Below, piece by piece: positions 19,668 through 64,000 of a stretch of DNA of 64,000 bases. The position numbers and the translations under genes were made by a program. Positions within the stretch are counted from its first letter, which is position 1; every line of letters begins with the position of its first letter. The DNA is from Bugula neritina (taxonomy: Eukaryota > Animalia > Bryozoa), in assembly GCA_964035545.1 (NCBI GenBank), contig OZ037765.1:32735504-32799503 (forward strand), given 5' to 3'. The notes under the pieces are model-generated. The model saw only the letters and a list, made by a program, of their open reading frames with translations, did not search any database and had not been told where the DNA came from.

Positions 19668-20249
19668 GCTGGCTGTATAGACATTTCATTCAAGTCCTAA
19701 GGATAAACTGAAACACCTGAAAAAGTGAGGCAATATTGCTTAATGAAATATCTTGGTTGTTTTTCATTCATAAACTGATTTTTAATTCTTTTTAGAAAAA
19801 AATGATTACTAATTAGACTTAAGACAAACAATAAATAGTGTGATCACCGACAGCTCATTCAAATTTAACATATAATTTACTTTTAGTCTAGACTCCTTAG
19901 TTAATCTATTATCTAAACAGCTTTACTTTTAGACTTGCAAACTAATACTTAGTAATAGCAATTAGGTTGCTTGCTTAAAAGTTAGTAAATCAATCCAGCA
20001 TTACAAGATTGTCAAGTTTTATACCCAGTGGTTCCATTTGGCTTTACTCTTACAGTTACTCTAACCCTAAAGTCTAAATGAGTAAATCTTCAAGTTTATT
20101 TTACAGTTAATGTTATTACTCTTAACAGTAACTTACAGTTACAGTTCGCATAACTAAAACTAAAAGTAACACTAATTCACTAATTGACTTTAAAAGTAAC
20201 TAAGGCGGTCTAAGCAATTACAACTATTAGTACAAGCATAACCATAGTC

Positions 20250-37880: not shown

Positions 37881-40800
37881 CTACGTCTGCTGATCAGTGT
37901 TCTCATTGGGAGGCACGGAAGGATCTTCACCTGCAAACACAACTCAGACTAAATGCTGTGTGGTCTATTGAGTATCAGTAACAAGAAAATTTACATAGCC
38001 TCAAACATTCTGACATAGATCAAAGCTGTGTACCTACCTGCAGAATCAGTGACGGGCCCCCCTTCATTTTGCTCGTCCTTGGCCATATTCTCAGTCTAGA
38101 GATATTGGAAAAAATCAATTTAGGAGAAGAAAAAGTCAAGCATACAAATTTCATGCTAGTGGAGATACTAGAAAGTAGTTGAGAGAATTGTCACAGAAAA
38201 GTACCTGATTCACAGTGTCATTAGTCGGATGAAGGCCTTCAGAAGCACCTGGTGTCGAGTCTGAAGGGGCACCTGCTGGAGCACCTGGTGGAGCACCTGG
38301 TGGAGAGTAGGCTGGAGTTTGGGGCTCTACCGCCTGTAACAAATATCACAACACAGTTAATAAATTTTACCAAGTTATGAGGAGTTGTGTCAGCTCAACG
38401 TTTAACAGATTTTATTCAATCTGTAATAATAGTTTCTTGTGATTGAAAAATATATATCTAATGAATATGCTAAAATTGACTGATGGTGCATAAACTAGGA
38501 TTATCTAATTGGATATCAAATAGGGAGATGTAAAATATAACTAAGTGAACGGAATAAACAGCTAGCAGGTGATAATTCCAATGGATGAATCAACCTGAGT
38601 TAAGTAGCTGAGTCATGCGGCAGCGTAATATACGGCAGCAAAGTTGCCGAGACTCACCTGTTGATCCGGCACAGCTGACTCTCTGGCAGAGTATTGCTGG
38701 TAAGCAACAGGCTGATTGGCTGAATACGCATCAGACTGGAACTGTGGGTTACCCATAGAGTAGGTTGAAGATTGAGACACTTGATACATGGGGGAGGGAA
38801 CCTGTTGAGGGGCTATTTGTTGAGGGGCTATTTGTTGAGGGGCCATTTGTTGAGGGGCCATTTGTTGAGGGGCCATTTGTTGAGGGGCCATTTGTTGAGG
38901 GGCCATTTGTTGAGGGGCCATTTGTTGAGGGGCCATTTGTTGAGGGGCCATTTGTTGAGGGGCCATTTGCTGAGGGGCCATTTGCTGAGGGGCCATTTGC
39001 TGAGGGGCCATTTGCTGAGGGGCCATTTGTTGCGGGGCCATCTGCTGAGGGGCCATTTGCTGAGGGGCAATTTGTTGCGGGGCCATCTGCTGAGGAGTTA
39101 TTTGTTGAGGGGCCATTTGCTGAGGGGCAACTTGTTGAGGGGCAACTTGTTGAGAGGCCATTTGTTGAGGGGCCATCTGCTGCGGAGCCATTTGCTGAGG
39201 GGCCATTTGTTGAGGGGCTATTTGCTGCGGGGCCATTTGTTGAGGGGCCATATGTTGAGGGGCCATATGTTGCGTGGCCATTGGTTGCGGGGCTATTGTT
39301 TGAGAGGCCATTTGTTGTGGATGCATTTCTTGCGCTGGAACTTGTTGGGCGATCATCTGCTGATCTCCGGGGTAAACTGGTTGCTGCTGACTCGCAGGCT
39401 GCTGTGACGTCGTCTGCTCAGCCATCATTCTTTCCTGTTTTTGCTTCTTTTGTTGCTCAAACAACTTATCATACTTGCTTCTCAACTCGGCCTTGTGTTT
39501 GATTACCAGCGCCTCAAACTTGGCGGAGGTCATGAGGGGTTTGCTGTCACATTCCTGCAATAACAGTCAACTGTCCAATGAGAAACTGGGTAACATAAAT
39601 GTCTGTCCAATGAGCTCGCAAAAATTAGCGTGAAATTAATAAGTATAAAACAAGTAAACACATATCTAGTAAGTATAGAGCAAGTGAGTACACAACAAGT
39701 AAGTGTATAATAAGTAAATACATGTATAGCAATTTATAGAAAGATAATGAAGATACATAAAAATCTGATGTAATTATTTGATGGTCACTTCACAGGAGCC
39801 TGAGAGGAACTGCAAGTCTTTCACCATCCTGATGCTCAATAACTCGGAGAATATCAATTATGTGAATTCATTTAATTGAAGCTTACAACTATTGGACTAT
39901 AAGCTATCCCAGCTGCATAAAACCAATACATGTCCCACCTCCTTCAGCTTCTCCGCAAATTCCTCACTGCTTTCCGTGAACTTCCTCTTCTTTGCGTTGA
40001 ATTTATCAGTGATATCTGAGAGTTCTTTCTCCAACTTCTGCTGATGGTCCATTAGAGATCGTACCTAGAAGACAGTCATAGTAAAGTGTGAGCTGTAGGA
40101 TAGTGAGACCGGTGCTCTAGAATGTTCTCTAATACTAGCAAAGACTCTTGCCCTTTAAAAATTCATCTGGACATGATATAGTGGTTAGTATAACATTGTT
40201 GGGTAAGGTAACAAAGAAAGTGCAAAAATTTTGTTTCAAAAAGATTGAAAATGAGACATTCAAAATAAAAACCACAAGCCAAGTTCTTGCAAGTTCCAAG
40301 AGTTTAAGGCTAAGTGACATAATACAATATATTACCACTCATCTCTCCTCACCAAATGCACTGTATAATGTAGATAAAGTTTCGGTCATAAAACTTTGAT
40401 AATTAACCTGTTTTCTGAGTAACGCCATCCGTTGCTCCGTAACCACGGATCTTGAGTCAGGGACGAGAGACTCGGAGAACAACTCGTTCACCAGAGCGTG
40501 GTTCCTGTGATACCGACTGGCCGCCACAGCTTTGACAGAGACGTTAGACTCAGTTTCCATGTTGTAGTCGGCTGGCTGGATAGACACCCGGTGCTCATTA
40601 GCAGCAGACTGAAACAGCAACAGAAGAGAGGCTACAGGTCACAGAGGAGGTCACAGGAAAGGTCACAAGCACAAACAGAATTATTGAAGCAAAAAGCCAC
40701 AACTTTGAAATAACAATTTTGTGTATCTGCATTCAAAACAAAGTCTGAAAATTCTCACCCAAATAGACCCGTATTTAAAAGCTTATTTTAAAATTTAATC

Positions 40801-43506
40801 TTTCAATAAATACCTTTGCCACTTGACAATAAAAATTACAATGTTGATCATAAATTCCTGCAGATGGTACAAATAGTTATTATTGGTTGCAATAAATTCT
40901 GATTGACTTTCAAGTCAATGAGCATCAAAAACAAATTATTAATTCAAAATAGAAGTAAAAGGTTTTTAAGAAAAACCATTCATTTCAGAACTTAGAAATA
41001 AAGAGACACAACTAATACAGCCTCCAGCATCAAAGAGTTGTATTTACATTTTTAGACCGCCTCTCTTCCTCTTCAATTTGATGCTCAGCTCTCTGCTTTT
41101 CTCTCAGATAATTCTGGTACTGAGCTGAGTTGTGGAATATCTTCAGATTCTCCTGGAACTGTATCTGTACACAGAGCATAGATTTGAGATTGTATCTTCA
41201 CACAGAAGATAGCACTGATACTGTATCTTCACACAGAAAACAGTGTGAGAATTAAATTCTCATAGAAAAAAGATTGTATATAGACATGAAAGCAGAGATT
41301 CTGCCTATACCACAGAAACTTAGTCTTTACAGGATTGCACAGAGAAATTAACAAACAAAACAAATACCTTAGCGACTGAAGCCATTTTTATTTAGCAATA
41401 ACTATACACTATATATCCTGCATACGATATGCCAACAGAGTGAATTATGCACATATTGAAACTCAGTTTTATTATATGTAATAGCTGTCACTAGCTATCT
41501 TGCAGGTAGCCAGCTTTTTTGCTTTTTCATTGTGTGTGATATCTAAATTACAAAACATGACCTAATTTCTCCAGAAAATATAAAATAGACCAAACTATCT
41601 AACCAACTGCCATCTTCAATAAAATAACCCAAGTTCTAAAATAACCTACTTACACTTAAAGACACGCAACACGACAAAGAACCTAATTTATATAACATTA
41701 CCACATTACAAAAATATAAACAAGAACAACTCAATGATATGAGCTTCACAGAGAATATTTGACAGGTTTTGCTATCACAAGGAGACAACACACACCTTGT
41801 CGGCTTCATAAGCATCCATATATTCCTTCTTCTCTGCATCCGAGAGCTCTCGCCACATGTGACCGATAATCTTACCAATCTGCCAGAGTCTGAGGTCAGC
41901 ATTCTTAGCCTTTACTGACTCCCACACCTTTCGGCTGTACCTCATGTAGGGCATAAGGGGCTTCTCCGGAGCTTTCGGTGCTTTGGGTAAAGTCTAGTGT
42001 AAGAAAGCAGCAATGAGTCTAAGTGCTGACAAAGCAAAGCAATCTAAGATAATTAAAATTTTGAGAAACATAAAAATAATATATGGGTCATTTCACCTAT
42101 TTTAGTCCACACTGGAAACCTCCAGATTTTAGCTGTTTTTTGCAATTTAGCTGGTAATAAACATTGTTTTTTGTCGAAAACCAATAAAGTACCAATAAAT
42201 ACACCTAAATAATCGAGGTTATTTTTAATTTTGCTTGATTTCCCATGTTTTTTCCTAATTATTCAGCTACTTTCGATTTCGGGCCATTATGACTTTTTCG
42301 TAACGATCCGCAATCTAAATTAGCTAAAGAAATAGAAAAAAAAAACATGGGAAATCAAGCACAATTAGGAAGAACCTTGATTATTTATATGTATTTATTG
42401 ATATTTTACTAGTTTTGGGCAAAAATCCATTTTAATTAGCAGCTAAACTGTAAAAAAACAGCTAAAATTTGGAGATTTTCAGTGTGTACCAAACTAAGTA
42501 AAATGATTCATATTATATTATCAATATATTCAAAGAAAAATCCTTAAATTAGAACATGAAAATGTGTGGATTCATTAACAAAACATTTGAACAAAAACTA
42601 ACTAAAGAAAAATGGTGGGAATACCTGGTAATAATAGATCTAAAATTACAAAACAAACACATCTATTAATTCAAAGAAAAAACAGCAACATTTGTTAAAA
42701 AAGGAGCTACATTTACCGTTGGAGTCTTTGAAGATGATTGTTTAGATGGGGTGAAGGAGGAATGGCCTGGGGAGCCTGAGACAAAGGGGGGCACCTGAGG
42801 ACAGCAAATATATCTTCAAATATTCAACAGAAGTCAACAAACTCAACTGATAACAAATAAAAGCTCTATAAAATGAAAAAATCAGAAGATTAAACAAATC
42901 AAAGATATGAAAAAAATAGTCTTATCTTACTGGTGAGCTGCTGAGACCTGGTGACTTTCCATATGAAGGACGGGACCGGTCTGCAAACACAGAATATCAT
43001 TTACATGAGCACAGGCTATAAACCTTTTCATGTTCTTCAATAGTGAAGAGCAGTTTATTATTAGCCTGTAGACCTACATTTAAAGTGCTGATTAACATAA
43101 AATAAAATAAAACTGGCAAATGCACTATATGTATACCTAATTTTTTTCTGAGAACTTGTAACAAAGCAGCATTTTATTATAATACTGAATGCTGTACTGG
43201 TGGTGCAGAGAAGCAGCCTATCAAATGCTTTAGCTTCTAAGACAATTCAAAGCAACATCTAATGGATTCACTAGAACAGTGATCACTTTCTTATCTAATG
43301 CAAAGTAATTTCAATTAATGGCTGATGGCATGCACACCACCTTTGAATTTTTCTGCAAATGAGCCTTTTCGTATGACTGGTATCACACTTTTTTTAATTC
43401 TTTACACTAATTAGAATCAAAGAAGCATCATTACATGTTTAAGTCAGAATTTACCTCTGAATGGGGGCGTGGCAGACATTCCTGGACGAGCTCCAATCAT
43501 TGACAT
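37881..43506 (-). CDS. SMARCE1: SWI/SNF (BAF) subunit SMARCE1/BAF57: HMG box, NHRLI-like domain, coiled coil, Q/P/M-rich tail
   Basis: Exons in transcript order: 43455-43506, 42931-42980, 42717-42794, 41796-41993, 41048-41164, 40408-40608, 39939-40064, 38658-39554, 38205-38333, 38038-38095, 37881-37930 (TAG). [22 protein letters not shown]...[15 protein letters not shown]; [52 protein letters not shown]. Confidence 0.93.
38802..39326 (-). repeat. Coding 15-bp minisatellite encoding ~35 (M/I/V)APQQ pentapeptides in SMARCE1 exon 8
   Basis: atggcccctcaacaa / atggcccctcagcaa units in frame within exon 38658-39554. Confidence 0.95.
42082..42512. mobile_element. Foldback MITE (~430 bp, long imperfect arms) in SMARCE1 intron 3
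   Basis: tgggtcatttcacctattttagtccacactggaaacctccagattttagctgtttttt...gcttgatttcccatgttttt is mirrored by aaaaacatgggaaatcaagc...aaaaaacagctaaaatttggagattttcagtgtgtaccaaactaagtaaaatgattca; TA flanks. Confidence 0.8.
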
Positions 43507-44900: not shown

Positions 44901-46030
44901 TGGTACTGATAGCGATACTCGTACTCATACTCATACTCATACTCATAGTCATACTCATACTGATACTCATACTCGTAGTCGTAGTCACACTCACAGTGAA
45001 TCTAGCTAACACTAACAGTAACACCAACCGCAACAGTAACAGTCATGTAACAGTAAATGAGTAATACCTAAACTTTGAGACTCACTCTCAGACACTGACA
45101 GTGACATGCTGAGAGTGATTACATTTACTATCACTATCAGTGTTATCATTAGTATTACTATAATAATAATAATATTAGTATTACTATATTAATTAATATT
45201 ATTATTACCAAGTCCAATGGCAATAGTGAATAGTAATAGTACTAATAGTCATAGTAATACTAATAGTAACACTAATAGTAATACTTAATAATAATAGTAT
45301 TACTCCGTAATAGTAATACTAATAGTATTGCTATTACTATTAGTATTAGTATTAGTGAGCTATAAGATTAAGTATTGCCATTAGTCGATTAGACTTAGTC
45401 AGTTAGTGATTGTAATATCGTAATAATGTTGCACTTACTGTTACTGTTAGTGTTACTATTAGTATTAGTGTTGGTATTACTGTATTAGTATTACTCTATT
45501 GGTGATAACCCTAGTGATATTGATAGTTATTTATTCATTATTGATTGTCATTATGATTATTATTATATTTATAACTTAATCTGATAAATGTAACTTGTAA
45601 CTGTAAGTTATTATTTATACTTATTGTTATTATTAGTATAAATAATAGCATTGACAATATCAATAGTTGTCTGTTTCATAGTTATACTAATTGAGCTAGT
45701 AGTTACTGTTAGACTGAGTTACTATAGTATTAGTTGGCTGCTTGAGTTAGAGTTGATTATTTATTATTGTAGTTACAATTACCAGCTATAATAGACATAG
45801 TTACTAGTAGCAATGCTAAAAGTAATACAGTTAATGAGTTATACTCATACTTGTAGTTTATAGTTATATTTATAGAATTACTATTAGTATTAGTTAGTCA
45901 TCATCATAATCATTACGTTAATAATTAACTAATAGTAATATAAAACTACTTTATTATTATACGTTATAAAGCCTCTACAGCTCACTGGAAGCCTATCACT
46001 ATCAAGTTGTAGTTTACTAACAAAGACCCA

Positions 46031-48511
46031 ATGAGTGAAAACTCTCCCGTAATCAGTTTGTCTGGTGCTGAAGTAATTAAAGAAGAAGATAACACAGAGT
46101 CATGTGACAAGGAAGAAAGTGTTGAGACTGAGTCATGTGCAGCAGAAACAAAAACTATGTCGAAGAATCAGCAGCGAAAACAGCGACGTCTGGAAGCTAA
46201 ACTCAAGTTCAGGCCTGAGAAAAGGTGGTTAGCATGTTTGTACTTTGAATTAAATCAGTTTTGTAGAATGATATCTGTATGTTAGCTTTGAAGTATGATG
46301 GCTAGCAGATTGAGTCTAAGTAGTCATTTATGTTGTTTATTCTCATTGCTGAGTAGTAAAAATTATCTTTAATAAAGTAATTAAAATACCTGAACTAACC
46401 ATCAGATATGCTGCACTGCAGGGTTGACTTACTCGTTCTATCAGTCATTGAATTTGTTTCTATAGAAAGTTAGAGAGAGAACGTAGAAAAGAGAAAAGAA
46501 GACAAGCTATAAGTGAAGGGGTGGTACTGCCCCCGTCCCGTAAGAAGCTGAAACAGAAGCTGATGGAGCCGAGTGACATAAGTATAGTAGTGGACTGTTC
46601 GTTTGAAGAACAGATGCATGATGGTGACATCAAGAAGCTGGTCAAACAGATACAGCACTGCTACGCTATAAACAGGAGATCTCCTTGTCCTTGTAACGTA
46701 CTTGACTAGTTTTATGTTATGAATCAGTATACTTAGTAAACATTGCACAGTCTTGAATATGGTTTTTGTACCAAGTTAGTCTAGAATATTCTCTATAGAG
46801 TCTAACTGAATAGTGGTGCTGGTAAAGATTTACCCAACTATCATGATAGTAGATGGACATATTTGAGCTGTGACAGTGTCTCTACTCTTTACAAAGTTGT
46901 AGGTTTCTGTAGGAGTTGTATGGACATTGTGTCTGCCGTCAACTTCACTTCTCTGTTTTGTGTTTCAGTACGTTGTGTCCAGTTATGGTGGTAAGATGAA
47001 GGATATAATAGAGAACCTGTCAGGTGCCACTCAGTGGAATGTAAGTGCAGGTGCTTTCAGGTGTCACATTCAATGTTGTTACTTTACTAGACTACTACTC
47101 AGCTCAACCAATCAGTAATTAGTATTATCCCAATACCATTAATACCCTGCCCTGACTATTTTACTTTTAATGTTGATTAGTTAGTCTGTATTCATGATAC
47201 ACTTTTTAGATATCTTGGAGAGAAGAATCATACGATTCCTTGTTTAGTAAAGAAAATATAGTTTACCTGTCAGCAGAGTCAGAGAATACTCTCACCTGTC
47301 TGGAGGAAGGAAAAGCGTATATCATAGGAGGTCTGGTTGATCACAACTCTAAGAAGGTGATTCTTGAGTTAATTTTGAGAAAAGAGCAATGACAAATTTG
47401 GTTTACCTCTCTTTTCTATGTATCACTTTATCGAACATGTATGCCCAATAAGATTATGCAATGTCGAAAGTTGTAAGATTTTCATTGCTCTTTTAGTTTC
47501 TATCAATTTTTAATATTTTCTCACTTTAGACAGCTCGCTAGAAATTCCTTCGCTTTAACAATTGCAATTTGAATTTCTCTTCCCAAATCATTCAGAAAAG
47601 TATAATTTAAACAAATATTAGGGAGGTTTTGTTTTGAATTTTCTTATCTAGTAAAGAATATGTTTTTGAAGAGATGTGTTGCTAATTGTTACTATATCAA
47701 AATTTGAAATTTTATGCTGCACTGTGTAAAGTATTTTGCATAATTTTGATTGGCCACAATCTAACTTTGAAAAGAGTGTTTTTTGCCCTGAGTGTAAATG
47801 CATACGCAATGATATTGGCTTTACGTTTTGAATGTTTTTCACCATGTGATTTAGTATGGGATGCAAAATATTTCTCAGTATTCCTTCCTCAACGGGAAGC
47901 CTTTATCAGCAGAAATATGGCCCGATCCTCACTCTGGTTTTCTTGTGTGTGTGACAGAATATGTAATGTTCAAGATGTAATACCTTGAAGTTGTATTTCT
48001 CTAAAGATTTAGCTGTATTGTTAGATGGTTAATATTGAGCACGCAACTCCCACTCCCTTAAATATCGCATATATTTCAGGGTTTGTGTCACGAGTTGGCT
48101 GTAAAGAGGGGAGTGAAGCATGCCCAGCTGCCTATATCACAGTATATAGATATGAAGAGTAGGAAGGTGCTGACAGTAGACCATGGTGAGTCATCAATAT
48201 ACAAGAGTTTCACTCTACTCACTGGTATACACTGCGCTGTATGTTTACTCTCCTGTGATTGGCTACGTGTGTGGTCCTAGTCTATGACTCATCAACCCTG
48301 CTGTAACAACTCTCCCTCTCTGTTTGTAGTGTTTGAAATACTTCTCAAGTATCAGCAGCAGAAAGACTGGGAGTCAGCTTTCTTTAGTGTTATACCAAAG
48401 CGTAAAGGAGCTCAGGCTAAATTAGACTCTAATCTGTGTAGTTCAGGTCATGTGACAGAGGGGGCGACTAAAGAGACTGAAGTTAGTGAATCTAATGATA
48501 GGAAAATTTAG
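46031..48511 (+). CDS. TRMT10A: tRNA (guanine(9)-N1)-methyltransferase TRM10 homolog A (SPOUT family)
   Basis: Exons 46031-46224, 46466-46697, 46969-47040, 47210-47356, 48080-48185, 48330-48511. MSKNQQRK...; [11 protein letters not shown]...[16 protein letters not shown]; [10 protein letters not shown]...[11 protein letters not shown]; [10 protein letters not shown]...[13 protein letters not shown]...[15 protein letters not shown]. Confidence 0.93.
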
Positions 48512-48980
48512 TGTTGAGAGAATCTGTGTAGACATGTTAGTTCAACTGTTTAGAGGAAATGCTGTACTTTATAGCAGACTGACTGTATTTATCATCATTG
48601 TCAGGTATTAATATAAAATATAATAAACTACATTGAATTGTATTCAGTTCTTGAAAGTACTATTACTTAGTAGTCTATTTAAATATTCCTTTTTATTGTT
48701 GTTTTTTAAATATATTATATATAATATATAACTGACGCTCTTGTATTTATTACATAACAGAGTGTCAATTGTTTCTAATAGATAGTCATTTGAAAGAAAC
48801 TTTTAGGCTTGACAAAAATTATTGCAATGACTTTATAGAACATAATTTTACACTTTAGCTTGATTATTACACACAGTGCACACATGGTATATTATAGCTA
48901 TATTAATGTTATTGTGCTTGCTGTAGGCCAAAATATTGGTTCAACCATGTGAGTGACGGTTCATGTTTTGGTTACAGACT

Positions 48981-49759: not shown

Positions 49760-50757
49760 GTCTATACAAATGCATAATTCTCATTAACATAGTAGGCTAC
49801 TGTGTATGTGGACTGATTTTACTATTCAACTCTCTCGACTTGACAGTGCAGTGGATAAATGCTCACTTTATATGGCTAAGTACATTGAGATGTGATGTTC
49901 AAGTCACATGACCAGCTGACACAGAACTCTACTGCTGTAGTTACTAGTTACAGTGAATAATTCAGGTATGGAGTTAGTATGTAGCGTATAAATACGCTGA
50001 GTATAAATAATAGACTGTAAGTATAGAGACTCTGTAGCTACTCCAATGAATGGTTTTTTTATTCTATATATTATGTATAAGTCTTTAAAGCTCAGCCATT
50101 CTTTGTAATATATGAATCAAGAAACTAGGTCACTTCGCAGTAAACAAGATTAGGCAAGTGAATTCTAACATTGAAACTAGACTAACATGTAGAATATGGG
50201 TAACAATAGAGTCTTTTTTATAGATATTATATTATAGAATAATAGCATACCAACCATCATTGAAATTTGATTACCACGGCATTTAACTGCTTTGAATTTA
50301 TTAGCTCACATGATGCAGTACAATGAATAGAAGCTATAAATTTCAATATCTACTGAGTAATCAATAGACCCTCCACTCTTCTATACACATTGATTTATTC
50401 TATTATTAGTCTCCCAGCAGTGAAGGTGGAGACTGTGACTCCATTTTCTCTTCATCTCAGAATAAGATCTCTCTTTCAGATTATCTCCACATACTGACAC
50501 TATATGCAGGTGTAATATGGAGCATGCAGGTATGTCTTATTATAGTAACACTGTGAAGTTATTTATTCAAACTCAGTGAGTAGTTTAGTTAAACTGGAGT
50601 ATAGAATGATGGTTTATTAAGAGAACTAATTAGGTATTCTGTGCAGCTTTACTGTTACTGTGGGCAAAATATTTTCCAGTTTAATTCCATGAATTAGGCT
50701 GATAGAGTAGATGTTATACATTTGAATGGAAAACCACATTTAGTAAGCACAGTTATA

Positions 50758-51638
50758 CTACTTACTGTAGACACACAGACAGACTACTTACTGTAGACAG
50801 ACAGACTACTTACTGTAGACACACAGACAGACTACTTACTGTAGACACACAGACTGCTTACTGTAGACACACAGACAGACTCCTTACTGTAGACACACAG
50901 AGAGACTACTTACTGTAGACACACAGACAGACTACTCACTGTAGACACACAGACATACTACTTACTGTAGACACACAGACAGACTACTCACTGTAGACAC
51001 ACAGACTGGCTACTCACTGTAGAGACACAGACAGACTGACTACTTACTGTAGACACACAGACAGACTACTTACTGTAGACACACAGACAGACTACTCACT
51101 GTAGACACACAGACAGACTACTTACTGTAGACACACAGACAGACTACTCACTGTAGACACACAGACAGACTACTTACTGTAGACACACAGACAACTACTT
51201 ACTGTAGACACACAGACAGACTACTTACTGTAGACACACAGACAGACTACTTACTGTAGACACACAGAGAGACTACTTACTGTAGACACACAGACAGACT
51301 ACTTACTGTAGACACACAGACAGACTCCTTACTGTAGACACACAGAGAGACTACTTACTGTAGACACACAGACAGACTCCTTACTGTAGACACACAGACA
51401 GACTACTTACTGTAGACACACAGACAGACTACTCACTGTAGACACACAGACAGACTACTTACTGTAGACACACAGACAACTACTTACTGTAGACACACAG
51501 ACATACTACTTACTGTAGACACACAGACTGCTTACTGTAGACACACAGACAGACTACTTACTGTAGACACACAGATATACTACTTACTGTAGACACACAG
51601 GCAGACTACTTACTGTAGACACACAGAGAGACAACTTA
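50758..51638. repeat. 26-bp minisatellite (CTACTYACTGTAGACACACAGACAGA), ~34 copies
   Basis: Direct tandem array in a probable 5'-UTR intron of the LRR gene. Confidence 0.95.
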
Positions 51639-51906
51639 ATTTCAATACTAAGAGTTAAAGCAAGAATAATTATTACAAATGCTGATGCCATCTTGTGTAT
51701 AGACTGTTGCTTCCTATATATATATTCAGACTCTCAGTATATTATTGTGATAGCTATCATTTATATGAAAATATTAAACAATATTTAATTTATATTTTCT
51801 TGTAGGTCATTTAGGAGCTCAAACACACCAATAGTTACAAAGAAGAGATTCAACTGCTATACTGTAGATGATACTCAACACTTAGTAAAGTGTATATAGG
51901 TCAAAC

Positions 51907-54654
51907 ATGGAGGAAGACACTTCTGAAGGTAATCTACCATTATTCTAAAGTATAATTTATTCAATGTAGTGTTTTCTTTCTCTAGTATAAAATTAGGCTA
52001 AAGCTAAATGTATTTCAATGCTTCTAATATTTTGATAGCATATAATCTTTTCTGATGCAAAATTTAAAAAAGAAATACATTATATGGATTAGAAGCATGC
52101 AGAACAACCAGTAGATGCCACAAAAGGGAGTAGAAAAATAAAAAACTTGGGTTGGTTATATTAAGTAAGCAACTACCTTGCTATATATAAATATGAATCC
52201 TGGGTTAGTTTAATATATCAGAAGATTACGTCTCTAATAGCATATTGAGGTAGAAAAGTAGAGCGTGGTAGTATTGAATCTCAGTAGCTAAAATATTAAC
52301 TATGATGGGGGTGTCATGTCTTTAGGATGAAAAGCAACAAAGTGATGGTGTTTGGTAAACTGTGTAATACCCAATCAAACCTGGTTTAAAGAACACCTCT
52401 TTGTTAAACTCGGTGAATTTTCTGCTATACAAATACTATATAAAATGTTACACAATTTCAAAGGCAGTTATATAGATTTATATAGTGGCCTCTGCAATTA
52501 AAAACATGAACAATATTTGCCTGTTTAAAATGCTTGTAATGTGTACAGAGCTGACCGTTATGAGTTTATCAAAGACCGGAAGGTATACTTTGTAATAATG
52601 ACTTCAAATACATACTCTATCACGTTATGAATTATTTCAACTAATTATAAGAAGTAGTTGATGATTACTGCAGCAACCAACTAGATTTAGCGATTATTCA
52701 GAGATTGCCAAAATGTTTATACAGGAAGTAGAATACACTGTGAACCATCTATATCTATTTAGCCTTCATTAACTGGCTGTGATGAAGAAGTGTTAAAAAG
52801 ATAGGGTAGCGAAATATTAATAATATCATGAGCATCAATTACAGTATGTATGTATTAATAATACTATCTCTGTGTTGTTACAGAGAGTTTCAGTATCTGG
52901 TTCAGACATTCTGGACAGAATCCTGTAGACTTGAAAGATGTAAAGCTGGCTGCAACCAAATCATGTACTTTGAGTGAAGTGAAGACTCAAGTTGGGAGTT
53001 ATCAACTCACTCACCTCAAGTTAGAGGAGACAATTCCTAAGAATATAGGAGAGATTGCTTCTCATGCTGTTTGTTTGGTACTTGAAGGTATAACTGACAA
53101 GGAGAGTCTGAATAAGTGAGTGTTTAGTTGAGTATATATGAGTCAGAGCACTTCCACTCATGATATGATTTATATATGAATTTGTTATGTAGTTTATAGT
53201 AGACATATATTATGTGTCACTATACTGTTACACTATACAGCACTAGTGTAATCTATATGCTGTTTCTTTATATTACAGTCTCAGTCAGCTAACTCAGTTA
53301 GAGGAACTACACATAGGAGGGAATACTCTCAACACAGTACCAGATGTTGTGTCATCACTCACATCACTTAAACAGTTGAATATGTGGAGTTGTGGTATAT
53401 CCAGCCTACCTGAGAGGTTTGTGTGTCACATGTTTATTACTGCTTCACAACATCATTATTACTACTCTGTAACTTATATTTATACGTAGCTTATATAGTC
53501 TATAAAATAATATTCAGGCTATAGGGTGTGGCTATAATTATTTCTGTGCTCAACCTGAGTTCCCTGTGTTATACAATTACATAGTAAGGGCAGAGTGTAG
53601 TTTTTTGGCCAGCCTCCCTCTCGAATGCATGATCATGAATAGAAAAAATGGGGGTCATGAAAATTGCATATGGTTCAAACATTTTTAATATTTTGAGACA
53701 CATAGAATCCCAGTTTATTTGTAAGCATCATATCAGATGCTACAGTCGAAGCTTTATCTGGGATATAACTTTACCAAATAATCAATAATATATTTGTAAC
53801 ATTCGGATTCGTGGTCGCATGCATCTTTTTGTGCTGCATAAAATACATATGTTATGTGTATTTTTTATTCTCTTGTTATAGTACAACTTTATATTACAGT
53901 CTCAGTCAGCTGACTCAGTTAGAGATACTACACATAGGATGGAATACTCTCAACACAGTACCAGATGTTGTGTCATCACTCACATCACTTAAATTGTTGA
54001 ATATGAGTGGATGTGGTATATCCAGTCTACCTGAGAGGTTTGTGTGTCACATGTTTATTACTACTTCACAACATCATTATTACTACTCCGTAACTTATAT
54101 TTATACACAACCCATATAGTATATAAAATAATATCCAGGCTATAGGGTGTGGCTATAATCTCTGTACTCAGCCTGAGTTCCCTGTGTTATACATTTAAAT
54201 AGTAAGGGTAGAGTGTACTTATTTTGAAAGCCCTCCTCTCGAATGACCATGAATAAAATTATTAGGACTCGTGAAAATTTCATAAGTGATTCAAACATTT
54301 TTACTAATAATATGACCAACACAAAAACCCAGTATATTTGTAAAAGTCATATTAGGTGCTAAAGCCACCAGTTTATCTGGGATATGAATTTGAAAAATCG
54401 TCAATGATATATTTGTAAAATATGAGTTGTAGTCACATGTATATTTCTGTGCTGCATAACATACATATGTTATGTGTATTTTTATTCTCTTGTCATAGTA
54501 TAACTTTATATTACAGTCTCAGTCAGCTGACGCAGTTAGAGACACTATGCATAGCATATAATCTTCTCAACACAGTACCAGATGTTGTGTCATCACTCAC
54601 ACCACTTAAGCAGTTGAAGATGAATAATTGTTGTATATCCAGTCTACCTGAGAG
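51907..54654 (+). CDS. Leucine-rich repeat protein, 5' portion (3' end not found in window)
   Basis: Exons 51907-51928 (MEEDTSE, tentative), 52884-53115, then three 138-nt phase 2-2 exons 53279-53416, 53900-54037, 54517-54654, each LSQLTQLExLxIxxNxLNTVPDVVSSLTxLKxLxMxxCxISSLPE (two 23-aa LRRs). Probable UTR exons end at donors 49965 and 50529. Confidence 0.8.
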
Positions 54655-54880
54655 GTTTGTGTGTCACATGTTTATTATTTCTTCTTAACATCATAACCAT
54701 CTCCCTTTAAATTATATTTATACATAACTATTAGTATATAAGATATGTACAGGTTATAAATGTGTATATAGGTATTGTGTCTCTGTACTCAGCTTGAGTT
54801 CCTTGTGTTATACAATTAAATAGTAATGGCAGAGTGTAGTTATTTGGAGAATCCTCCTCTCGAATTACCATGAGTAGAAT
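53265..54880 (+). repeat. Tandem array of three ~620-bp exon+intron cassettes
   Basis: Exon starts at 53279, 53900 and 54517 (periods 621 and 617). Shared acceptor tatattacag and donor GAGAG|gtttgtgtgtcacatgtttatta, and alignable intron bodies. Third unit breaks off at ~54880. Confidence 0.92.
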
Positions 54881-55779
54881 TGTTTTAGTGGGGGTGCCAA
54901 CATGCAAAAAATAAGCGGGTGGAGCACATTGACACTAACCTTTGTCGCTATATATCACTGTGAAGCCAACATTCTACTGATTTTAAATCTGCGAGTAACT
55001 TTTTTGTGTCTGGGGAGGGGGGGTTCTCGCTTGAAACGGGTGGATATACAGGGGTTGGCGAATTTTCAAGGGGGCATCATCAAATTTCAAATATGCAATT
55101 ACTTGAGTAATATTTTCTAGATATGTTGTACACCTATTAAAGTATTTTTCAAAGAAATTGTAACTAAAAATTAATAGGTGGACGGAGCCTATGGCATAAT
55201 GTATTGCTTTTTCGGATGTACCAGATATTCGCTAAGCCGCCACTTTTTTGTTGTAGCATCTAGAATGGTAATTTTTAGCATGTAGACACTCTTCAGTGTC
55301 CTTATAAGTCACACTAATTTTTAGTATATTTTGACCCTCAAAATGTTTTTTACATCTCTGAAAATCAAAAAAGTTAAAATCGAAGTTATCTCCCCCGTTT
55401 AAAAAGTTGCTTTTACCCAATATTATTGCATTTTATTAAGTGGTTTGACATTATTATAATATAAATTGAAGTTTAACCTGTTCTTATTAGCTGATGGTTC
55501 ATTTCCAGCACATAGAGGAAGTACTGCTTTAAACGCACAAATGTGAAATGTTTCATCTCTCGAATAGCTATTAACATTTATTACTTGTTTGATAATGAGC
55601 CATGTGTATTCTGCTAGTCACACACATTGTTAAAAGGCAACTTTAGAACCTGCAATTAACAGAACAAATTATTTTAGAATAATAACAACTGTTAAACAAT
55701 GCAGGAATAAGTAATCCAGAAAGGGGATATTTGTTTTCGTCATTGCTGTAGAAGTAAAATTGTTTCACCATAATTTTTG

Positions 55780-58180
55780 AATTTTAGTCTTCTTTTGCCC
55801 GCCAACTCTGTCCATATCTACATTTTTCATATTTCGATTCACAGTGTCTTTAAAACTTAGCCTGGACCTTCCTTTGCAATGCTTACTTCCTTGAAGCAGT
55901 GAATAAAAGAGTTGTCTACAGATAAACGGCTATGGTCTATCTTATCTTGACGTCCTAGCCATCTCAAGTTCATCTGAATGAGGGTAGAGTTCAAAAATGG
56001 CTAATTAGCTCTCTTTTATACAATTTCCTTGACTAGTAATCTTGTTCCTCCAAGAGATACCCATGATTGATCATAGATATCGCATGACATATGCCTGCAC
56101 ACCGGACATGTTCAAGGTTTCAACACTATACAGTAAGGCAGCTATTACCGTAGCACGATACACCTGACACTTGACTTTGATTGGAACATGACGATTAGTT
56201 CAAAGTCTAGTCCTTGATTCTCCATACACTGCACTAGCATTTCCTATTCTCAGAGAGATTTCATTATCTACTTTAGCATTGGCAGCTACTGTGCTTCCAA
56301 GGTACTTGAAAGCTTTAAGGCCTGGCCTCACTCTCGTGAGAATCACACGGAATTTGTGTAACGATTTTCGTGAGTGATCTTCTCGTCAGACGAAACACAT
56401 AATAAATAGTCCTTGAATGAGTTTTGCACGGGATACAAACAGCAGAAAATTGGCCAACAGAGAAAAGTGGTAGAAATGAAATAATACTGTTGCTAAAATT
56501 CTATTGACCAATGAAATGGTGCTTATCGTTAATTGTGATTTTTCATCCATCGTCTTCGTTGGGTGCCCCCAACAAAGACGATTTCGTTTGAATTCCCTCA
56601 AATTTGATCATACGTTTGTGTTTTCGTGTCAAATAGACAACTTCGTGTGATTCTCACGAGCGTGTGGCCAGGCCTTTACACTTTTTCAAAGGTTATCCAT
56701 TGATGGTTGTGGTGTTTGGATTAGATGTTCTACTTTGAAAATTTTGAGGCTGATCCAGGCATTCTGTCTTCTTGATGTTGATTTTAGCACTAAAACTTTT
56801 TGCAACATTAGCAAAGTATGTATATCATCAGAGTGATATAAGGCACTATAGCACTAACACCAAAAAATAAGAAGTCTCTAACTCAGTAGTGGTTTCAATT
56901 TTAAAATTGAAATGAGGTACATCAAGTAGGTCTGCCTCTTCTCTAGTTTTTACATATATACCCTTTCCAAGCTGTCTTTAAAAGCAACTTTTAGTATGGC
57001 TGACAGGTAAAGTGAGAAAAGTATTGACGCGAGAACACATCCGTGCTTGCTTTCACGTGTTACTTCAAAATCATTTGCGAAGGAACTGCTATCATTGCTA
57101 CATATGTTTGCATGCCTGTATGAGGAGCTTCATTAATGCAAATAAACTTGTTCGTACAGCCAAACCTTTTAAGGACCTGCCAAAGGCCTGCAATAGATGT
57201 ACAATATGAAATGCCTTACTGAAGTCAAAAAATACCATATAGAGTGGCATGTTTTGTTCTGTGCACTTCTTTTGCACTTGCTTCAAGCAGAAACCATGTC
57301 TATTGTATTTCTTTCTACTCCTTAATTTACACTGAGACTCCAGTAGCACCTCTTGGGTAGTATGTGCATTTAGCCGATAGCATGCGAGAGAGATTCTTGC
57401 CTACAATAGATAAAAAATATGTGCCCAATAATTCCCCATTTACTTTCCCCATCCCCTTTCTTAAAAATCGGACAATGCCTGCATCCTTCCAGTCTGGTGG
57501 TACAGTCTTAGTGTTCCACACATTCTGTATTGACTTAAAAAGACAACCTGTCAATTTTTGACCACCATGTTTCCATATGTCAGATGGAATACTATCTCTG
57601 CCAACAGCTTTTCCATTCTGCATTGAACTAATTGCTGGCATTAGCTTATTCATATTGGGATGATCATTCAAAAGTGCAACAGGTGGCCTTTGCACCATAT
57701 TGTTATTTGCTGCTTCATCTAGCTCTCCTGGTATGTTGAGCAATTGATTGAAGTGGTCAGATAATCTTTCTAATATTTCCTCCTTTTCTTGTAGAAATGT
57801 GTATCCGTAGTAGTCACGGAGTTGAATCAATTTGGGACCATAAGCTTCATTTAGGCCTATATAGAATGCTTTCATGTCCCTTCTGTCTGCTTCCATTTAA
57901 AGTTTTATTGTTTTTTTTCCACCATCTACTTTTCATCTCTCTGGTATACCTCTGGGCTTTTTAGTAGGTCTTTCTTTTCAATATGGTATTATACTGGAGG
58001 AAAACCTGCCTCGCCTTGTTTCTCTTCTAAATCAACTGCCGTAGCAATTTATCATGTCCATTAAACCAATCTTCTTGGTGTTTCAGGATCTACTTACCCA
58101 GCACTTCAATTAACAGTTGAAAAGACTATTTTTCTCAAATCTTTCCACATTTGCTCTATGTCAACATTATGTACATCCCA
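55780..58180 (-). mobile_element. Decayed non-LTR retrotransposon (RTE-clade-like LINE) reverse transcriptase fragment
   Basis: Minus-strand remnants KHQEDWFN, GKAVGRDSIPSDIWKHGG...VPPDWKDAGIV, MVFFDFSKAF, FKYLGSTV...EISLRIGNAS...KCQVYRATVIAALLYSVET, GRPRLSFKD, with many stops and frameshifts. Confidence 0.85.
56318..56675. mobile_element. PIF/Harbinger(Tourist)-like MITE inserted in the LINE
   Basis: ~33-bp imperfect TIRs AGGCCTGGCC(T/A)CAC(T/G)CTCGTGAGAATCACACG; TTA target-site duplication (56315-56317 and 56676-56678). Excision restores the LINE frame ING*PLKKCKAFKYLGS. Confidence 0.88.
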
Positions 58181-59096
58181 ACACTTTAGATTCTCATCTA
58201 ATTCCTTCTCAAGGTTTTCTCTTTTCTTCTGATCTTTCAGCATGCCGGTATTTAGTTTATGCTGTGGCTAAAACTCATTTTTCCTGTAATGAAACTTAGA
58301 TCTAATTCAAATATTATTGTTGTTACAAGCTTTGCAAAAAACCATACTGTAATAAGGCTAATAAATTTTAAAAAAACTTCTTATTGGCCGGCAAAATCTC
58401 TTGACTGGATTTTGTGACTGCCTTAAATTCTCAAAATGATGAAATAAGCTGAGTCTTGGTTTGCTAAGTTTAAATGATTTGATCTGAGTTTCTTTAATTT
58501 CCTGTAAAAAACAGACACCATATGATTCCCCTCTAATTTTAATAATTATATTGTCAAGTCAATTTTACCAAATCTAAATTGTTGAGATGTCTTCTGTTGT
58601 CTTCTTTCTACCAACTGCATTTTCTAAAAAGGCAGCATTGTCTTTTACGGCTCACACGAAGGTGTGTGATACCTGGACAATACTTGCTAGAGTAATAGCT
58701 TGAAATCAATTGCTGAACTTAGTTCATTGATAGCTACCGCACTATCTATAGCCTTAGCATTTCCAAATATGAGTGATTGTGGTCTAAATTTGTAGTTACT
58801 ATATTATATGCTTGTTTCTAGTCGGGTCATTTACTGTTGTTGCTAATAAAACCTGCTTATGGGTTATTTTTGTCATTCTAGTAACGGTCACCAGAAATAA
58901 CTTGAGATTAAGATGATAATCCTGTTCTAGGTCAACATGAATTTTTTTCAAAAAGTGTTTTAAATAAATTTTGAGCACAGCTATACTGCTAATATTTCAC
59001 GTACAAGTACAAGGGTTATTTTATTTTTCCACATGGATAAACTTTTGAAGCACCTTATATAAATTTTACGTCTACAGTGACGAGGAAAACAAACAT

Positions 59097-59515
59097 TGTA
59101 ATGGATTTTAGTGGTGTAATTATTGTTAGTATTATATCGAAAGGGTCGAGACTATATGGTATGCTATTGTGGAGATCGACTACATCGACCTCCAGCGACT
59201 TGTAGCTATGGCTGACAGTGGCACCACTAGTAACTACCAATCAGGACTGACATACTAATTGATAGCAGGTGGAGCTAGCTACTCGTAGTGGAAGCGCACT
59301 GAGTAGCCAACCAGGCAGAGCAGCTTGGGACTTCATTTAGAGTAGTTGTGTATTAAAGCTCACTTATTATGTAATCGTTTCTATTCATGTTTAGCAGTAA
59401 TTAGAACTTCTTGTATCGTGTAAATAATAAACTTATCATAGCGTAAACAACCTGGTGTAGTGGCTTTGTTTAAGTTGACCCACACATAATATAGTGAATT
59501 GCGAAATTCACTACA
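59097..59515 (+). repeat. 5' LTR of the Gypsy element (boundaries inferred from termini and PBS)
   Basis: TGTAATGGA...TTCACTACA imperfect inverted termini, internal AATAAA near 59426, followed after 1 nt by the PBS. Confidence 0.7.
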
Positions 59516-59516
59516 G

Positions 59517-59531
59517 TGGTGGCAGCGGTGG
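59517..59531 (+). promoter_or_regulatory. Primer-binding site complementary to the tRNA-Leu 3' end
   Basis: TGGTGGCAGCGGTGG is the reverse complement of CCACCGCTGCCACCA. Confidence 0.85.
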
Positions 59532-59576
59532 AATCCCACTTAATACAAATGCTCCTAGCCAGGAAGTAGAAAGAAG

Positions 59577-60449
59577 ATGGCCGACGAGGACGACGCGCCC
59601 GGACAGGAGCCGGCAGCAGTAGAGGAGGATCACATAGGCGGCCCAGCGCTGCCTATGGACAGGTACCACTTGCGGGCTCCCATCTTCTCAGGGGAAGAAA
59701 ATGTGGAGCAATTCATCACTGAGTTTAGTGATGTGGCGGACATCTGCGGATGGCCGAATAGGGTTACTCTGATCCAGCTGCGGTTATGTCTGACAGGGCC
59801 GGCTAAACCCTATGGGATAAGCCAGAATGTCGGGGACATATTTGAAGCATTACGAGCTCGGTTTGGATTAACCGCTCGAGATGCTCGCGTGCAACTACAG
59901 GGGCTTAGGAGAAATCCTAAGAATAACCTACGAGAGCATGCTACCGCAGTAGAACGACTGGCACAAGTCGCCTACAGCGACTTGCCTGCTGATAGTCGAC
60001 AGAGTTTAGCACTGGATGCATTCCTCCAGTCTATTAACAACCTCGGTTTGAAACAGCATTTGCTGGTGGCCGAAGTTGAGGCTATGGAGAGAGCTCTAAG
60101 GCTTGGGAATGCCTATTTCCAAGCCGACAGTGCGAGTCGACCTGGTGCGACGATGCAGCAGGTCGGGGCAGATGACGACGTGTCGACGTCGCCGGCGAAG
60201 ACAGCTGTTCAGGTCGCCTCGGCAGCAGCAGACGAATCTACTAGCTTGACCACAAGCTTGATTCGAGAACTGCTAGCCGAGATCAGGCAACTGCGCCAGC
60301 AGTCGACAGCCGAGCGACCCAGGAGGTCGTCGGTAGCTGTCGATGACAGGCGCCGCCCCGTATGCTGGGGCTGTGGTAGTGGTGGGCACTTCATACGAAG
60401 TTGCCCCCGCGATAATGGGAGGCAGTTAAACAACAACGGCCCACGGTAA
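59577..60449 (+). CDS. gag: Gypsy Gag (intact ORF, CCHC zinc knuckle)
   Basis: 290-aa ORF with APIFSGEENVEQFITEF...W capsid-like start and CWGCGSGGHFIRSC knuckle. Confidence 0.9.
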   Translation: MADEDDAPGQEPAAVEEDHIGGPALPMDRYHLRAPIFSGEENVEQFITEFSDVADICGWPNRVTLIQLRLCLTGPAKPYGISQNVGDIFEALRARFGLTARDARVQLQGLRRNPKNNLREHATAVERLAQVAYSDLPADSRQSLALDAFLQSINNLGLKQHLLVAEVEAMERALRLGNAYFQADSASRPGATMQQVGADDDVSTSPAKTAVQVASAAADESTSLTTSLIRELLAEIRQLRQQSTAERPRRSSVAVDDRRRPVCWGCGSGGHFIRSCPRDNGRQLNNNGPR

Positions 60450-60492
60450 CTTCCGCCGACCGTGGGCCCCAGTTTAACTCCCAAGGCAGAGG
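60425..60492 (+). promoter_or_regulatory. Putative -1 ribosomal frameshift signal (slippery site plus stem-loop/pseudoknot)
   Basis: G_TTA_AAC at 60425-60431, 6-nt spacer, perfect 10-bp stem 60438-60447/60459-60468; loop CTTCCGCC can pair with GGCAGAGG at 60485-60492. Confidence 0.65.
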
Positions 60493-63448
60493 CTAAGGCC
60501 CAAACCCCACCGGGTGAGGAGGCCGCCTTCGCCAGAGTGGCAAGCCCCAAGGAGAGTGAGTAGGCCGCAAGGCTCACCAAAACCTCCGGCTTGGGCACTC
60601 AAAAACCGCTTTGAAGGTTTGCTTGATGAGGGAGTGAACGACGAGTGGGAGCAAAACAGGGATTTTCCTCGGTTGCCCACACGAGCATCAGTTCGATAAT
60701 TCACTCGGCCGCCCGTGTGTGAGCGAGACCGAGACGTAACCTGCCTGACCACGCAACGTCGACGACCCCCTCGCAACCAAAAAGCACAGGTGCATCCCCA
60801 ACTCCATGCACATGAGGTGTCGCCTCAAGAGACGAACCGCTCAGTGAGCGCTCAGCCATATGGAAGCAGCTATTTCCTCCCCGGCAAACTTGCTGGCAAA
60901 GCTGTCACATTCCTGTTAGATACTGGGTGCACCACAAATCTACTGAGTCGGCGTCTATTCAACACTCTCAGTGCCAGGGACAGGGCTAGCCTAGAACCAT
61001 ATGAAGGGGAACACGGCGCGTTGGCGGACGGGTCGTGTATTCCTTTCTATGGGGTAATCCAGTTGACTGGTAGAGTCCGTGATCAGACGATCAGTGAGAC
61101 CTTCATCGTCAGTCAACTCAAGGAGGACGCCATCTTGGGCATACCATTTTTTGAAGCGACACAGGTGCTACATCGACTTTAGCAAGTCGGCGGTAGGGAT
61201 GGCCGGGCATGAGCTGGCCTGTGTCGACCGATTTGGCTGACCCTTGGTGGGGGGAGTGCAGGTGGTACAGCGTTGCACTGTACCTGGGCGCTCCCGGGCT
61301 ACAGTTCGCTGCAGAGTGAACTGTAGAGAAATCTCCGAGCTAGGAGTGGTGGAAGGTGCACTGGGGGGCGTCCAGCTCGCTAACAGTCTAAATAGGCTGG
61401 ATGAGCGGGGGGGGAGTTCCTGGTCCGGTGCGTAAATCCTTTCACGGAGCCGGTAGAATTGCTGGCTGGGTCTCTAGTGGGGAAGTTCCATTCCGTACAG
61501 GAGGAGGATGTGGGGCCCGCGCTTGAGACGGCGGACGAAGCTCGTGGGGTACCCACTAGAGACGGCAGGGGGCCGGTGCCTGAACACGTAGCGGAGTTGT
61601 ATGACGATGCCTGTGATGGCTGCAAGAGCAAGCGGGAACGCCTGGTGATGGCACGGCTACTCTCTGAGTACAAGGACGTGTTCAGTTGCGGCGACCATGA
61701 CATGGGTTTGACTAAGACTGTCTGTCATGAGATACCCCTGGCGGCGGGGATGGCGCCCATTCGGCAACCGACCCGCCGGTTGGGTCCTGAGAAGGAGAGA
61801 GAGGTGAGCCGTCAGGTGCAAGACCTTCTGAACCGGGACCTGATTGAGCCAGGCCATGGGGCCTGGAGTTCTCCAGTCGTCCTGGTTCGAAAAAAGGATG
61901 GGAGCTGGAGGTTTTGCGTTGATTATCGCAGGCTGAACAGCACGACCATCAAGGACGCTTACCCTCATCCTAGAATTTATGAGTCGCTCGATGCCTTAGC
62001 TGGTAGCAAGTTCTTCCGCACGTTGGACTTGCTAAGCGGGTATTGGCAGGTGCCCCTGAGTCCTGAAGCACAGGACAAGGCCACGTTTATAACGCGGGAT
62101 GGGCTTTGGAAATGGAAGGTGTTGCCATTCGGACTTACGTCCGCACCAGCTACCTTCCAGCGACTCATGGAGCAGGTCCTGAGTGGGCTGCACTGGAAGA
62201 CTTTGCTCATCTATCTCGATGATGTCATTGTCATCTCCCCCGACACCGACACACATGTCAGTCGACTCAGGGAGGTGTTTGACAGGCTTCGAGCTGCTGG
62301 TCTGAAGCTCAAGCCCTCTAAGTGTGCATTACTGCAACGCGAGGTCAAGTACCTGGGCCATGTAGTTGGCCGAGACGGGGTACGGGCTGTGAGGGACTGG
62401 GCTGTCCCTGTCGACCTCCCTGAATTGCGGGCATTCCTGGGACTGGTAAGGTACTATCGTCAGTACATACCAGATTTCGCCGGAATTGCACAGCCGTTAA
62501 ATCGGCTGACAGCAAAGGGGGTGCGATGGCAGTGGACGCAGGCCGAGCAGAAGGCGTTTGACCACCTGAAGGATCGCCTGGTGGAAGCACCCATCTTGGC
62601 GTATCCTGACCCTGCGAAGGAGTACATTTTGGATACTGATGCCAGTAACCATAATGTGGGGGCTGTGCTATCGCAGGTCCAAGATGGTCGCGAGGTGGTG
62701 GTGGCTTACTATAGCAAGGCCCTGTCGGCGCCTGAGAAGAACTACTGTACAACCAGGAGGGAACTCTTGGCAGTAGTCAAGGCGGTCAAACACTTTAGAC
62801 CATATCTGTATGGGCGCACATTCCGTCTTCAGACGGATCATGCGTCTTTGATATGGCTGTGTCGACGAGCGGAACCATCAAGCCAAGTAGAGCGCTGGCT
62901 GGAGATCCTGGCAGAGTTTTCTTATCGGATCGAACATCGACCCGGTAAGAAACACAGTAATGCCGATGGACTCAGCCACCGCCAGGCCGATGGGTGTAAG
63001 CAGTGCCAGAGCATTGAGCGCAGGGATGGTGGACCCCTCGCTCGGACGTTGAAGCACAGTTGGGAAAAGCGGGTGTATACAGCTGGGAAGAAGGACAACT
63101 CCTGTCCGAATTTCCTAACGAAGCTGTTAACAACCTTCACGCAAACCCTACGCTGCTCAGGAACGTCGGGGAGCTGTGTCGGCTCCAGGCTACGCTACCA
63201 GGGGTGGTAGCTGACCTAGTCCGGACCAAGAAAGAGGGACGGCGGCCGAGTGAGGCCGAACAGCGAGTGAAGAGTGCAGAGTTTAAGTACTTCTGTGACC
63301 GCTGGGACTCCCTCAGGTTCAACAGCGATGGGCTGCTAACGATCACATTGGCAGCCGGCACCAATCGCAGTGAACGAGAGAGGGTAGTCTGCCCATCCGC
63401 TCTGAGGCGGGAGTTGATCTGGGACACCCATAGGCAAGCTCACGCGGG
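60450..63448 (+). pseudogene. pol: Gypsy pol (aspartic protease, RT, RNase H, partial integrase), disrupted
   Basis: LLDTGC (protease); WRFCVDYR, DLLSGYWQV, LPFGLTSAPATFQR, YLDD (RT); LDTDAS, RELLAVV, TDHASL (RNase H). Split over several frames (60514, 60715, 61244, 61459, 63060) with stops, frameshifts and a short deletion after GHVVGRDGV. Confidence 0.9.
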
Positions 63449-64000
63449 TGGGTGGGTGGGTGCCTGCATGAACTTTCTAAAAGTTGTCCACCAACAGCTG
63501 TCCTTGCCTTCCCAGAGAGAGATTTTTTCAAATATCTTAAAGAATTCCTGACACACTTTACTTATATAGCATGAAAATATTCATTTATGTCTTAGCTATC
63601 ATTTTAACACTCTTTTAGGATTTCAGGTCTAAACAATTTTGTTTTATAACAGTTTTAGTGCATGCATGTCCAAAAAACTTCGAGAATTTTTTTCGCCCTT
63701 CTGTGACGTATTACACCGCAGTTGCGAGAAATAGATGGAAACGCCGCCTGTAAGACATTCGGGAAATAAGTATAGGCTATATTTTCCGTTGCATGTAACC
63801 TTAGTTTTAGCATTTTTTAATTTATCGGACGTCTGTCTAGCCCCCCCAATTAGTATTTTTTTGTGGAATTTAGGTTTTATTTCATAAACAAATTTCGCGG
63901 CAATAAATACATAGCTACCAACTTACCGTGTCCGAGTCTGTGCAGTGTAATTGTGATAAAGATAAACCTAATACAGAAATAACATAAATACGATATCAAT

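Follow-up and report, generated by a model that had tools for sequence, protein, structure and literature searches.

Genes in which leucine-rich repeats (LRRs) are assembled from repeated exons are known from brown algae, whose LRR-ROCO genes encode one LRR per 72-nt exon, are subject to diversifying selection, and contain orphan LRR exons in antisense orientation within their introns (PMC3341825, PMC11378527). In bacteria, proteins of the LRR-AP-GTPase(Roc)-COR-caspase type are listed among predicted counter-invader proteins (Kaur 2021, PMC8195603). No description of an animal LRR-Roc-COR-caspase protein was found in the open-access literature, and the bryozoan family presented here, with at least 70-80 single-chain LRR-Roco-caspase genes, is apparently undescribed.

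The DNA read amounted to 264 contiguous kb, composed of the 64-kb window (the whole stretch of DNA analysed, part of a contig of 35.6 Mb in a genome of 216 Mb) and 200 kb onward; positions beyond 64000 are counted on from the window. The analysis revealed an 82-kb gene on the forward strand with 32 coding exons encoding 2,134 amino acids without an internal stop, in the order LRR array, Roc-COR GTPase, and caspase. The start-codon exon (51806..51928; ATG at 51907, MEEDTSE, phase-1 donor) was placed by an RNA joint and a frame check, and is followed by a 232-nt exon of phase 1-2 (52884..53115), probably the LRR N-cap, which is situated just upstream of the cassettes and was placed by the frame check and by an RNA joint from 53115 to a cassette (run X7). 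LRR cassette exons 1, 2, and 3 are located at 53279..53416, 53900..54037, and 54517..54654; each is 138 nt long, bounded by AG and GT, of phase 2-2, and composed of two 23-aa LRRs according to Pfam (E 1e-5 to 2e-6 for each exon) that align with solved 23-residue LRR proteins. The introns were duplicated along with the exons (53417..53899, about 16% different from the next intron, and 54038..54516), with a unit spacing of 621 and 617 nt. Cassette 2 has the same peptide as cassette 4, which lies 21 kb downstream and is 2 nt apart, while cassette 3 is a mosaic. These exons are the first three of 21 cassettes: a 20.5-kb intron holding mobile elements starts at 54655 and occupies the remainder of the window (54655..64000), past whose end the gene continues with cassettes 4-21 (75169-127217; L032-L037), a Roc-COR exon of 1,958 nt identified by Pfam (129525-131482; L037), three short exons, and five caspase exons with the stop (132663-134364; L037-L038). 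The 21 cassettes span 74 kb, encode about 42 LRRs, and are separated by introns of up to 20.5 kb with mobile elements. In a scripted frame check, all 32 coding exons were bounded by AG/GT at the expected places and joined in compatible phases; the exon ends in the 3' part were placed by inspection and homologues, without RNA, and the domain searches were run exon by exon, the joined spliced model being covered by the script alone. The initial annotation, which had proposed three symmetric 138-nt exons of phase 2-2 duplicated with their introns, likened them to ROCO genes, and suggested looking beyond the 64 kb for a C-terminal domain, was right in positions and spacing; the symmetry extends to all 21 cassettes of one gene, which carries a Roc-COR and, in addition, a caspase. 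On this chromosome, the 232-nt exon has eight close copies, each matched by one of eight close Roc-COR exons; this correspondence links cassettes 1-3 to the Roc-COR exon at a distance of 75 kb, there being no other for them to join. A stand-alone LRR gene ending at cassette 3 was rejected given this pairing and the fact that no stop exon was found. An assembly artefact was also rejected because the copies differ and variants are present in the DNA and RNA of other individuals.

Regarding the surroundings of the gene, the window contains a TRMT10-like tRNA m1G methyltransferase gene at 46013-48508 (+; Pfam PF01746), pieces of whose 3' end (48368-48701) recur just past the next two caspase ends and mark the tandem duplication unit. 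On the reverse strand, an ankyrin gene (12200-19685; KRIT1-like by eye), an SNX27-like sorting nexin with PDZ and PX domains (29975-35966), and an HMG-box gene (38616-41993; SMARCE1-like by eye) were identified, along with long tandem arrays of a 23-mer (x110; 26925-29457) and of a 26-mer (x34; 50757-51638), the second of which closely precedes the start exon. The intron that follows cassette 3 harbours the gag/pol of an LTR retrotransposon with RT and RNase H (59559-63548, +), a LINE-like fragment (57101-57896, -), and an element with 46-nt inverted ends (56309-56684), and the 18.6-kb intron after cassette 18 bears a Polinton/adintovirus-like insertion (L035:3400-10000, L036:1-5600) with ORFs for a double-jelly-roll capsid (Pfam 1e-30), a packaging-ATPase-like protein, and an endonuclease VII. 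Three cassettes of this gene are degenerate (L033:4642-4770, L034:8002-8130, and L035:2972-3112; 129, 129, and 141 nt), with a proline in the beta-strand and an altered acceptor context, still in frame inside duplicated blocks. The next gene in the cluster has 6 cassettes, the last of which (L044:4376-4516) contains a 3-nt insertion that creates an in-frame stop, although the reading frame is uninterrupted in the Roc-COR exon and the first caspase exon of that gene.

In our preferred reading, the gene probably encodes a cytosolic, single-chain LRR-Roc-COR-caspase receptor that is diversified in the germline and would sense a ligand through its LRR arm; we infer its biochemical steps. No membrane-length hydrophobic stretch is present in the 2,134-aa model. 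The same architecture could, however, yield its variety mainly through alternative splicing, with cells skipping or selecting among the 21 cassettes. All cassettes share phase 2-2 and near-identical splice sites, so that any one could be skipped in frame; moreover, the three degenerate cassettes and the stop-bearing cassette of the next gene would have to be skipped in order to do no harm, and 42 LRRs would form a very long solenoid. Contigs of the RNA-labelled run X7 contain joints between 51926 and 52882 (GT..AG), between the 232-nt exon and a cassette, and between cassettes, and coverage in run X10 falls mainly on exons; introns are covered in runs X2 and X4, where none of the X7 joints appeared among the rows listed. 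The RNA contigs are short and come from other individuals or paralogues (90-99% likeness), so the family is spliced as modelled, and these data say nothing on the cassette usage of this particular gene. No joint could be assigned to skipping, as the short paralogue contigs explain those of that type that were seen; in addition, family members with few cassettes exist, such as the 6-cassette next gene, whose in-frame stop may merely mark a pseudogene. We consider splicing as the main source of variety unlikely and retain the germline-diversified receptor as our reading.

At the level of the genome, at least 81 related Roc-COR exons were identified on seven contigs, and 77 of the 81 lack stops. 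A caspase match on the same strand and within 12 kb was found downstream of 71 Roc-COR exons vs. upstream of 2. The highest-ranking named homologues come from Watersipora subatra and, at 77-81%, from Bugula neritina. A B. neritina protein also reaches 88-91% against members of the family in this genome, so the DNA probably derives from B. neritina or a close relative, and Watersipora has full-length LRR-Roc-caspase proteins with the same two-LRR module. Among the best 8,000 candidates scored, the named homologues bearing a caspase were exclusively bryozoan. Database homologues carry the automatic name MFHAS1, with approximately 24% identity. The gene itself has no NACHT or NB-ARC central domain, a place taken by Roc-COR, and the genome search yielded one partial match for NACHT and none for NB-ARC, an absence that is suggestive, as well as three matches for gasdermin. 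The family may stand in place of NLR inflammasomes, which were not found in this genome. A different role, which we regard as rather improbable, is that these receptors serve colony self/non-self recognition or the control of bacterial symbionts, with caspase-mediated killing of cells wherever an incompatible contact occurs. As colonial animals, bryozoans are able to fuse or overgrow, symbiont metagenomes are among the sequencing runs in which the sequence is present, and a diversified face linked to a death effector would suit such a role equally. Allorecognition loci, however, are usually one or few, highly allelic, and often expressed at the cell surface, whereas the family comprises about 80 dispersed paralogues and the model is devoid of a membrane segment.

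The variation among cassettes was evaluated at 12 x codons, fixed beforehand from the pattern LxxLxLxxN/CxL, and at 33 framework codons, the assignment of the former to the concave face following the established LRR consensus. Exons 1 and 2 differ by 11 nt, 9 of which alter 5 amino acids, with 2 synonymous codons accounting for the rest; exons 2 and 3 differ by 19 nt, with 11 amino acid replacements and 2 synonymous codons. The three window exons have the same nucleotide sequence over codons 17-28, ISSLPE shows one silent change, and S29P in exon 3 is the one change outside the x positions. A total of 345 cassette candidates were counted genome-wide and 58 cassettes were read, from the 264 contiguous kb and from 20 loci chosen for their similarity to exon 1, a biased sample whose diversity pattern was unchanged in the unbiased subset of 23 cassettes. 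In the 53 intact cassettes used for the selection analyses (51 distinct peptides), pN was 0.31 at x codons vs. 0.05 in the framework and pS was 0.20 vs. 0.09; within the x codons, pN thus exceeded pS (bootstrap ratio 1.02-2.44). The codon model M2a was preferred over M1a (2dL 121; own implementation), with an omega2 of approximately 4.7 on 25% of codons, a value that is overstated because the framework dS is depressed by conversion or constraint. Nine of the 10 sites with a posterior above 0.95 under M2a were x positions, and the M2a vs. M1a comparison was significant for each half-exon on its own tree. Nucleotide diversity was 0.05 at fourfold framework sites and 0.31 in adjacent introns, and over all pairs the x positions equalled the introns (0.31 vs. 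0.31). In 15 independent sister pairs, by contrast, 72 of 360 x positions (20%) differed, compared to 242 of 4410 positions in flanking introns (5.5%) and 35 of 990 in the framework (3.5%), although the pairs were selected for low intron distance, a choice that favours the contrast between x positions and introns. The 53 cassettes display 45 distinct first-LRR and 37 distinct second-LRR faces. Concave-face positions are under positive selection. The earlier claims that changes concentrate at x positions and that a homogenised framework carries a diversified face both held once the sample, previously limited to three exons, had been enlarged; the substitution counts (5 + 2 and 11 + 2) were reproduced on recount.

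As a separate observation, the constant middle block (codons 17-30; window 53328-53369) has a silent-site diversity of 0.03 over all cassettes vs. 0.31 in introns, and these near-invariant silent sites may reflect conversion, splicing signals, or another constraint.

A rival explanation of the same variation is that the x positions are merely unconstrained, with purifying selection and conversion keeping the framework constant and drift increasing the number of cassettes in a region rich in transposons. The overall equality of x-position and intron diversity, the depressed framework dS, and the introns full of mobile elements fit this explanation; however, x positions evolve about 3.6 times faster than flanking introns in recent sister cassettes, pN exceeds pS inside the x codons, and 77 of 81 long Roc-COR exons are free of stops. 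Relaxed constraint is already disfavoured as an explanation, and we give it very little credence compared to the selected receptor.

When considering the domains downstream of the LRR array, COR was identified above the Pfam cut-off (PF16095, E 2.4e-10) directly after Roc and in the same exon, and Roc itself scored below the cut-off (PF08477, E 8.5e-4), with the G1, G3, and G4 motifs present (GQTMSGKT, DFGG, and THLD). The exon matches C. tepidum Roco and LRRK1/2 in the PDB. By domain content, the gene is a ROCO, and its GTPase and dimer functions are predicted. The caspase matches Pfam with an E of 7e-22, and its best PDB matches are of the caspase-3 type. Its predicted catalytic His and Cys are kept, as MSHGG and VACRS align with caspase-3, and the usual Gln of QACxG is replaced by Val here (QACSG in Watersipora). 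The exons of the p10 subunit are in frame and match the Watersipora p10, with the S1 arginine motifs REGS and SIR recognized by inspection. The interdomain linker of the caspase (L037:9490-9600) contains a 12-nt tandem repeat (QETQ-like) that is longer here than in the next gene. The His-Cys dyad is intact and Asp-specific proteolysis is predicted. The Val in VACRS counts against the caspase part of our reading. That variant motif could indicate a caspase that acts as a non-cutting scaffold or as a decoy for pathogen effectors, signalling through binding partners; given that His and Cys align with caspase-3 and that, by inspection, both substrate-pocket arginines are kept, we find this highly doubtful and favour a predicted active protease at the end of the receptor chain.

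Concerning the origin of the variety, block duplications of cassette groups are recorded in the germline, and 36 of the 53 cassettes have their nearest neighbour in another gene. The intron downstream of exon 3 contains 100 nt (from +7) that are identical to those of 6 cassettes, the exons of which differ from exon 3 by 15-23 nt. In three cases, a face block differs by 4-7 nt from the sister cassette yet is identical to that of a cassette whose flanks are less closely related. In 16 pairs, the 24-nt face blocks are identical even though the flanks on both sides diverge by more than 15%. Together, these observations fit patch conversion between cassettes. The PHI test gave p 0.06-0.21 for exons and was significant for exon plus intron at the widest window only (p 0.006), and half-exon incongruence gave p 0.55; results this weak do not establish that crossing-over is frequent within the constant middle block. 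Cassettes are diversified in the germline, and the duplication and exchange among cassettes anticipated by the initial annotation are visible in the block duplications and the shared face blocks. Somatic rearrangement of cassettes into an anticipatory, VLR-like repertoire, for which the near-invariant framework could serve as homology for templated exchange and patch exchange is indeed visible, is extremely unlikely, since the germline gene is complete and open, with cassettes that are spliced exons instead of the donor fragments that accompany an incomplete VLR-type gene, all cassette matches in the 264 kb lie on the coding strand with no inverted or orphan cassette except one 55-nt partial match, no APOBEC_N match was found in the genome, and C/T changes at x codons are rare (4 of 97 on the coding strand), although A/G changes number 45.

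In the proposed germline-diversified receptor, a foreign or altered molecule would bind the LRR concave face and shift the nucleotide state of Roc, and Roc-COR would then dimerise by analogy with C. tepidum Roco, which dimerises in the GDP-bound or nucleotide-free state and is monomeric when bound to GTP (PMC5714945). Equally, a GTP-monomer cycle could hold the caspase inactive. Initiator caspases activate by proximity; the attached caspases would thus come close to each other, cleave themselves within the acidic linker, and go on to cut substrates of death or inflammation, for instance gasdermins. Diversity of the repertoire would be generated mainly in the germline and over generations, as genes duplicate, symmetric cassettes cross over unequally, conversion takes place, and selection acts. 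A far-reaching extension, which we offer as a speculation with low odds, is that cheilostome bryozoans have replaced NLR inflammasomes with Roco-caspase receptors and that their cells or colonies choose or exchange LRR cassettes, by splicing or templated conversion, to create an anticipatory intracellular repertoire acting on a death protease. An animal family of approximately 80 genes that each unite sensor, GTPase, and caspase in one piece, in a genome that yielded no NLRs, would represent a new way of achieving intracellular immunity, one that converges with the brown-algal ROCO cassettes and the predicted bacterial systems. The family also offers a direct read-out for a long-open question, namely the process that is switched by the monomer-dimer cycle of Roc-COR, as in LRRK2: the fused caspase needs dimerisation, so the cycle becomes a measurable activity.

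When compared to the brown-algal LRR-ROCOs, the present family shares the LRR-Roc-COR core, symmetric repeated LRR exons, diversifying selection, a clustered family with fast turnover, and a proposed immune role. In contrast, the algal genes have one LRR per 72-nt exon and are devoid of a C-terminal effector, whereas this animal gene has two LRRs per 138-nt exon and a fused caspase; antisense intronic LRR exons like the algal ones were absent from the 264 kb. Alternative splicing of LRR exons is reported for the algal ROCOs. The bacterial conflict proteins (PMC8195603) have in common with this family fast-evolving LRRs, Roc-COR, and a C-terminal effector that can be a caspase; they are prokaryotic, intronless, and predicted, while the caspase here appears animal-like and its Roc-COR has approximately 25% identity to the bacterial ones. 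Among animals, MFHAS1/MASL1 and the ROCOs of Trichoplax, Lingula, and Aplysia (CARD, death, TIR) likewise combine LRR-Roc-COR without a kinase and a link to death pathways, but they recruit partners via adaptors; in the bryozoan gene, the protease forms part of the same polypeptide, the LRR region is built from cassettes, and the family has far more members. The receptor would work like the NLR inflammasome, the PIDDosome, or the apoptosome, with an LRR sensor, a nucleotide switch, and caspase activation by proximity; unlike these, it has a GTPase switch in place of NACHT/NB-ARC and would need no adaptor. Finally, the gene differs from the lamprey VLR in being complete in the germline, in having its cassettes as exons, and in a product predicted to be neither secreted nor GPI-anchored, and shares with it variable concave-face residues displayed on a constant LRR framework.
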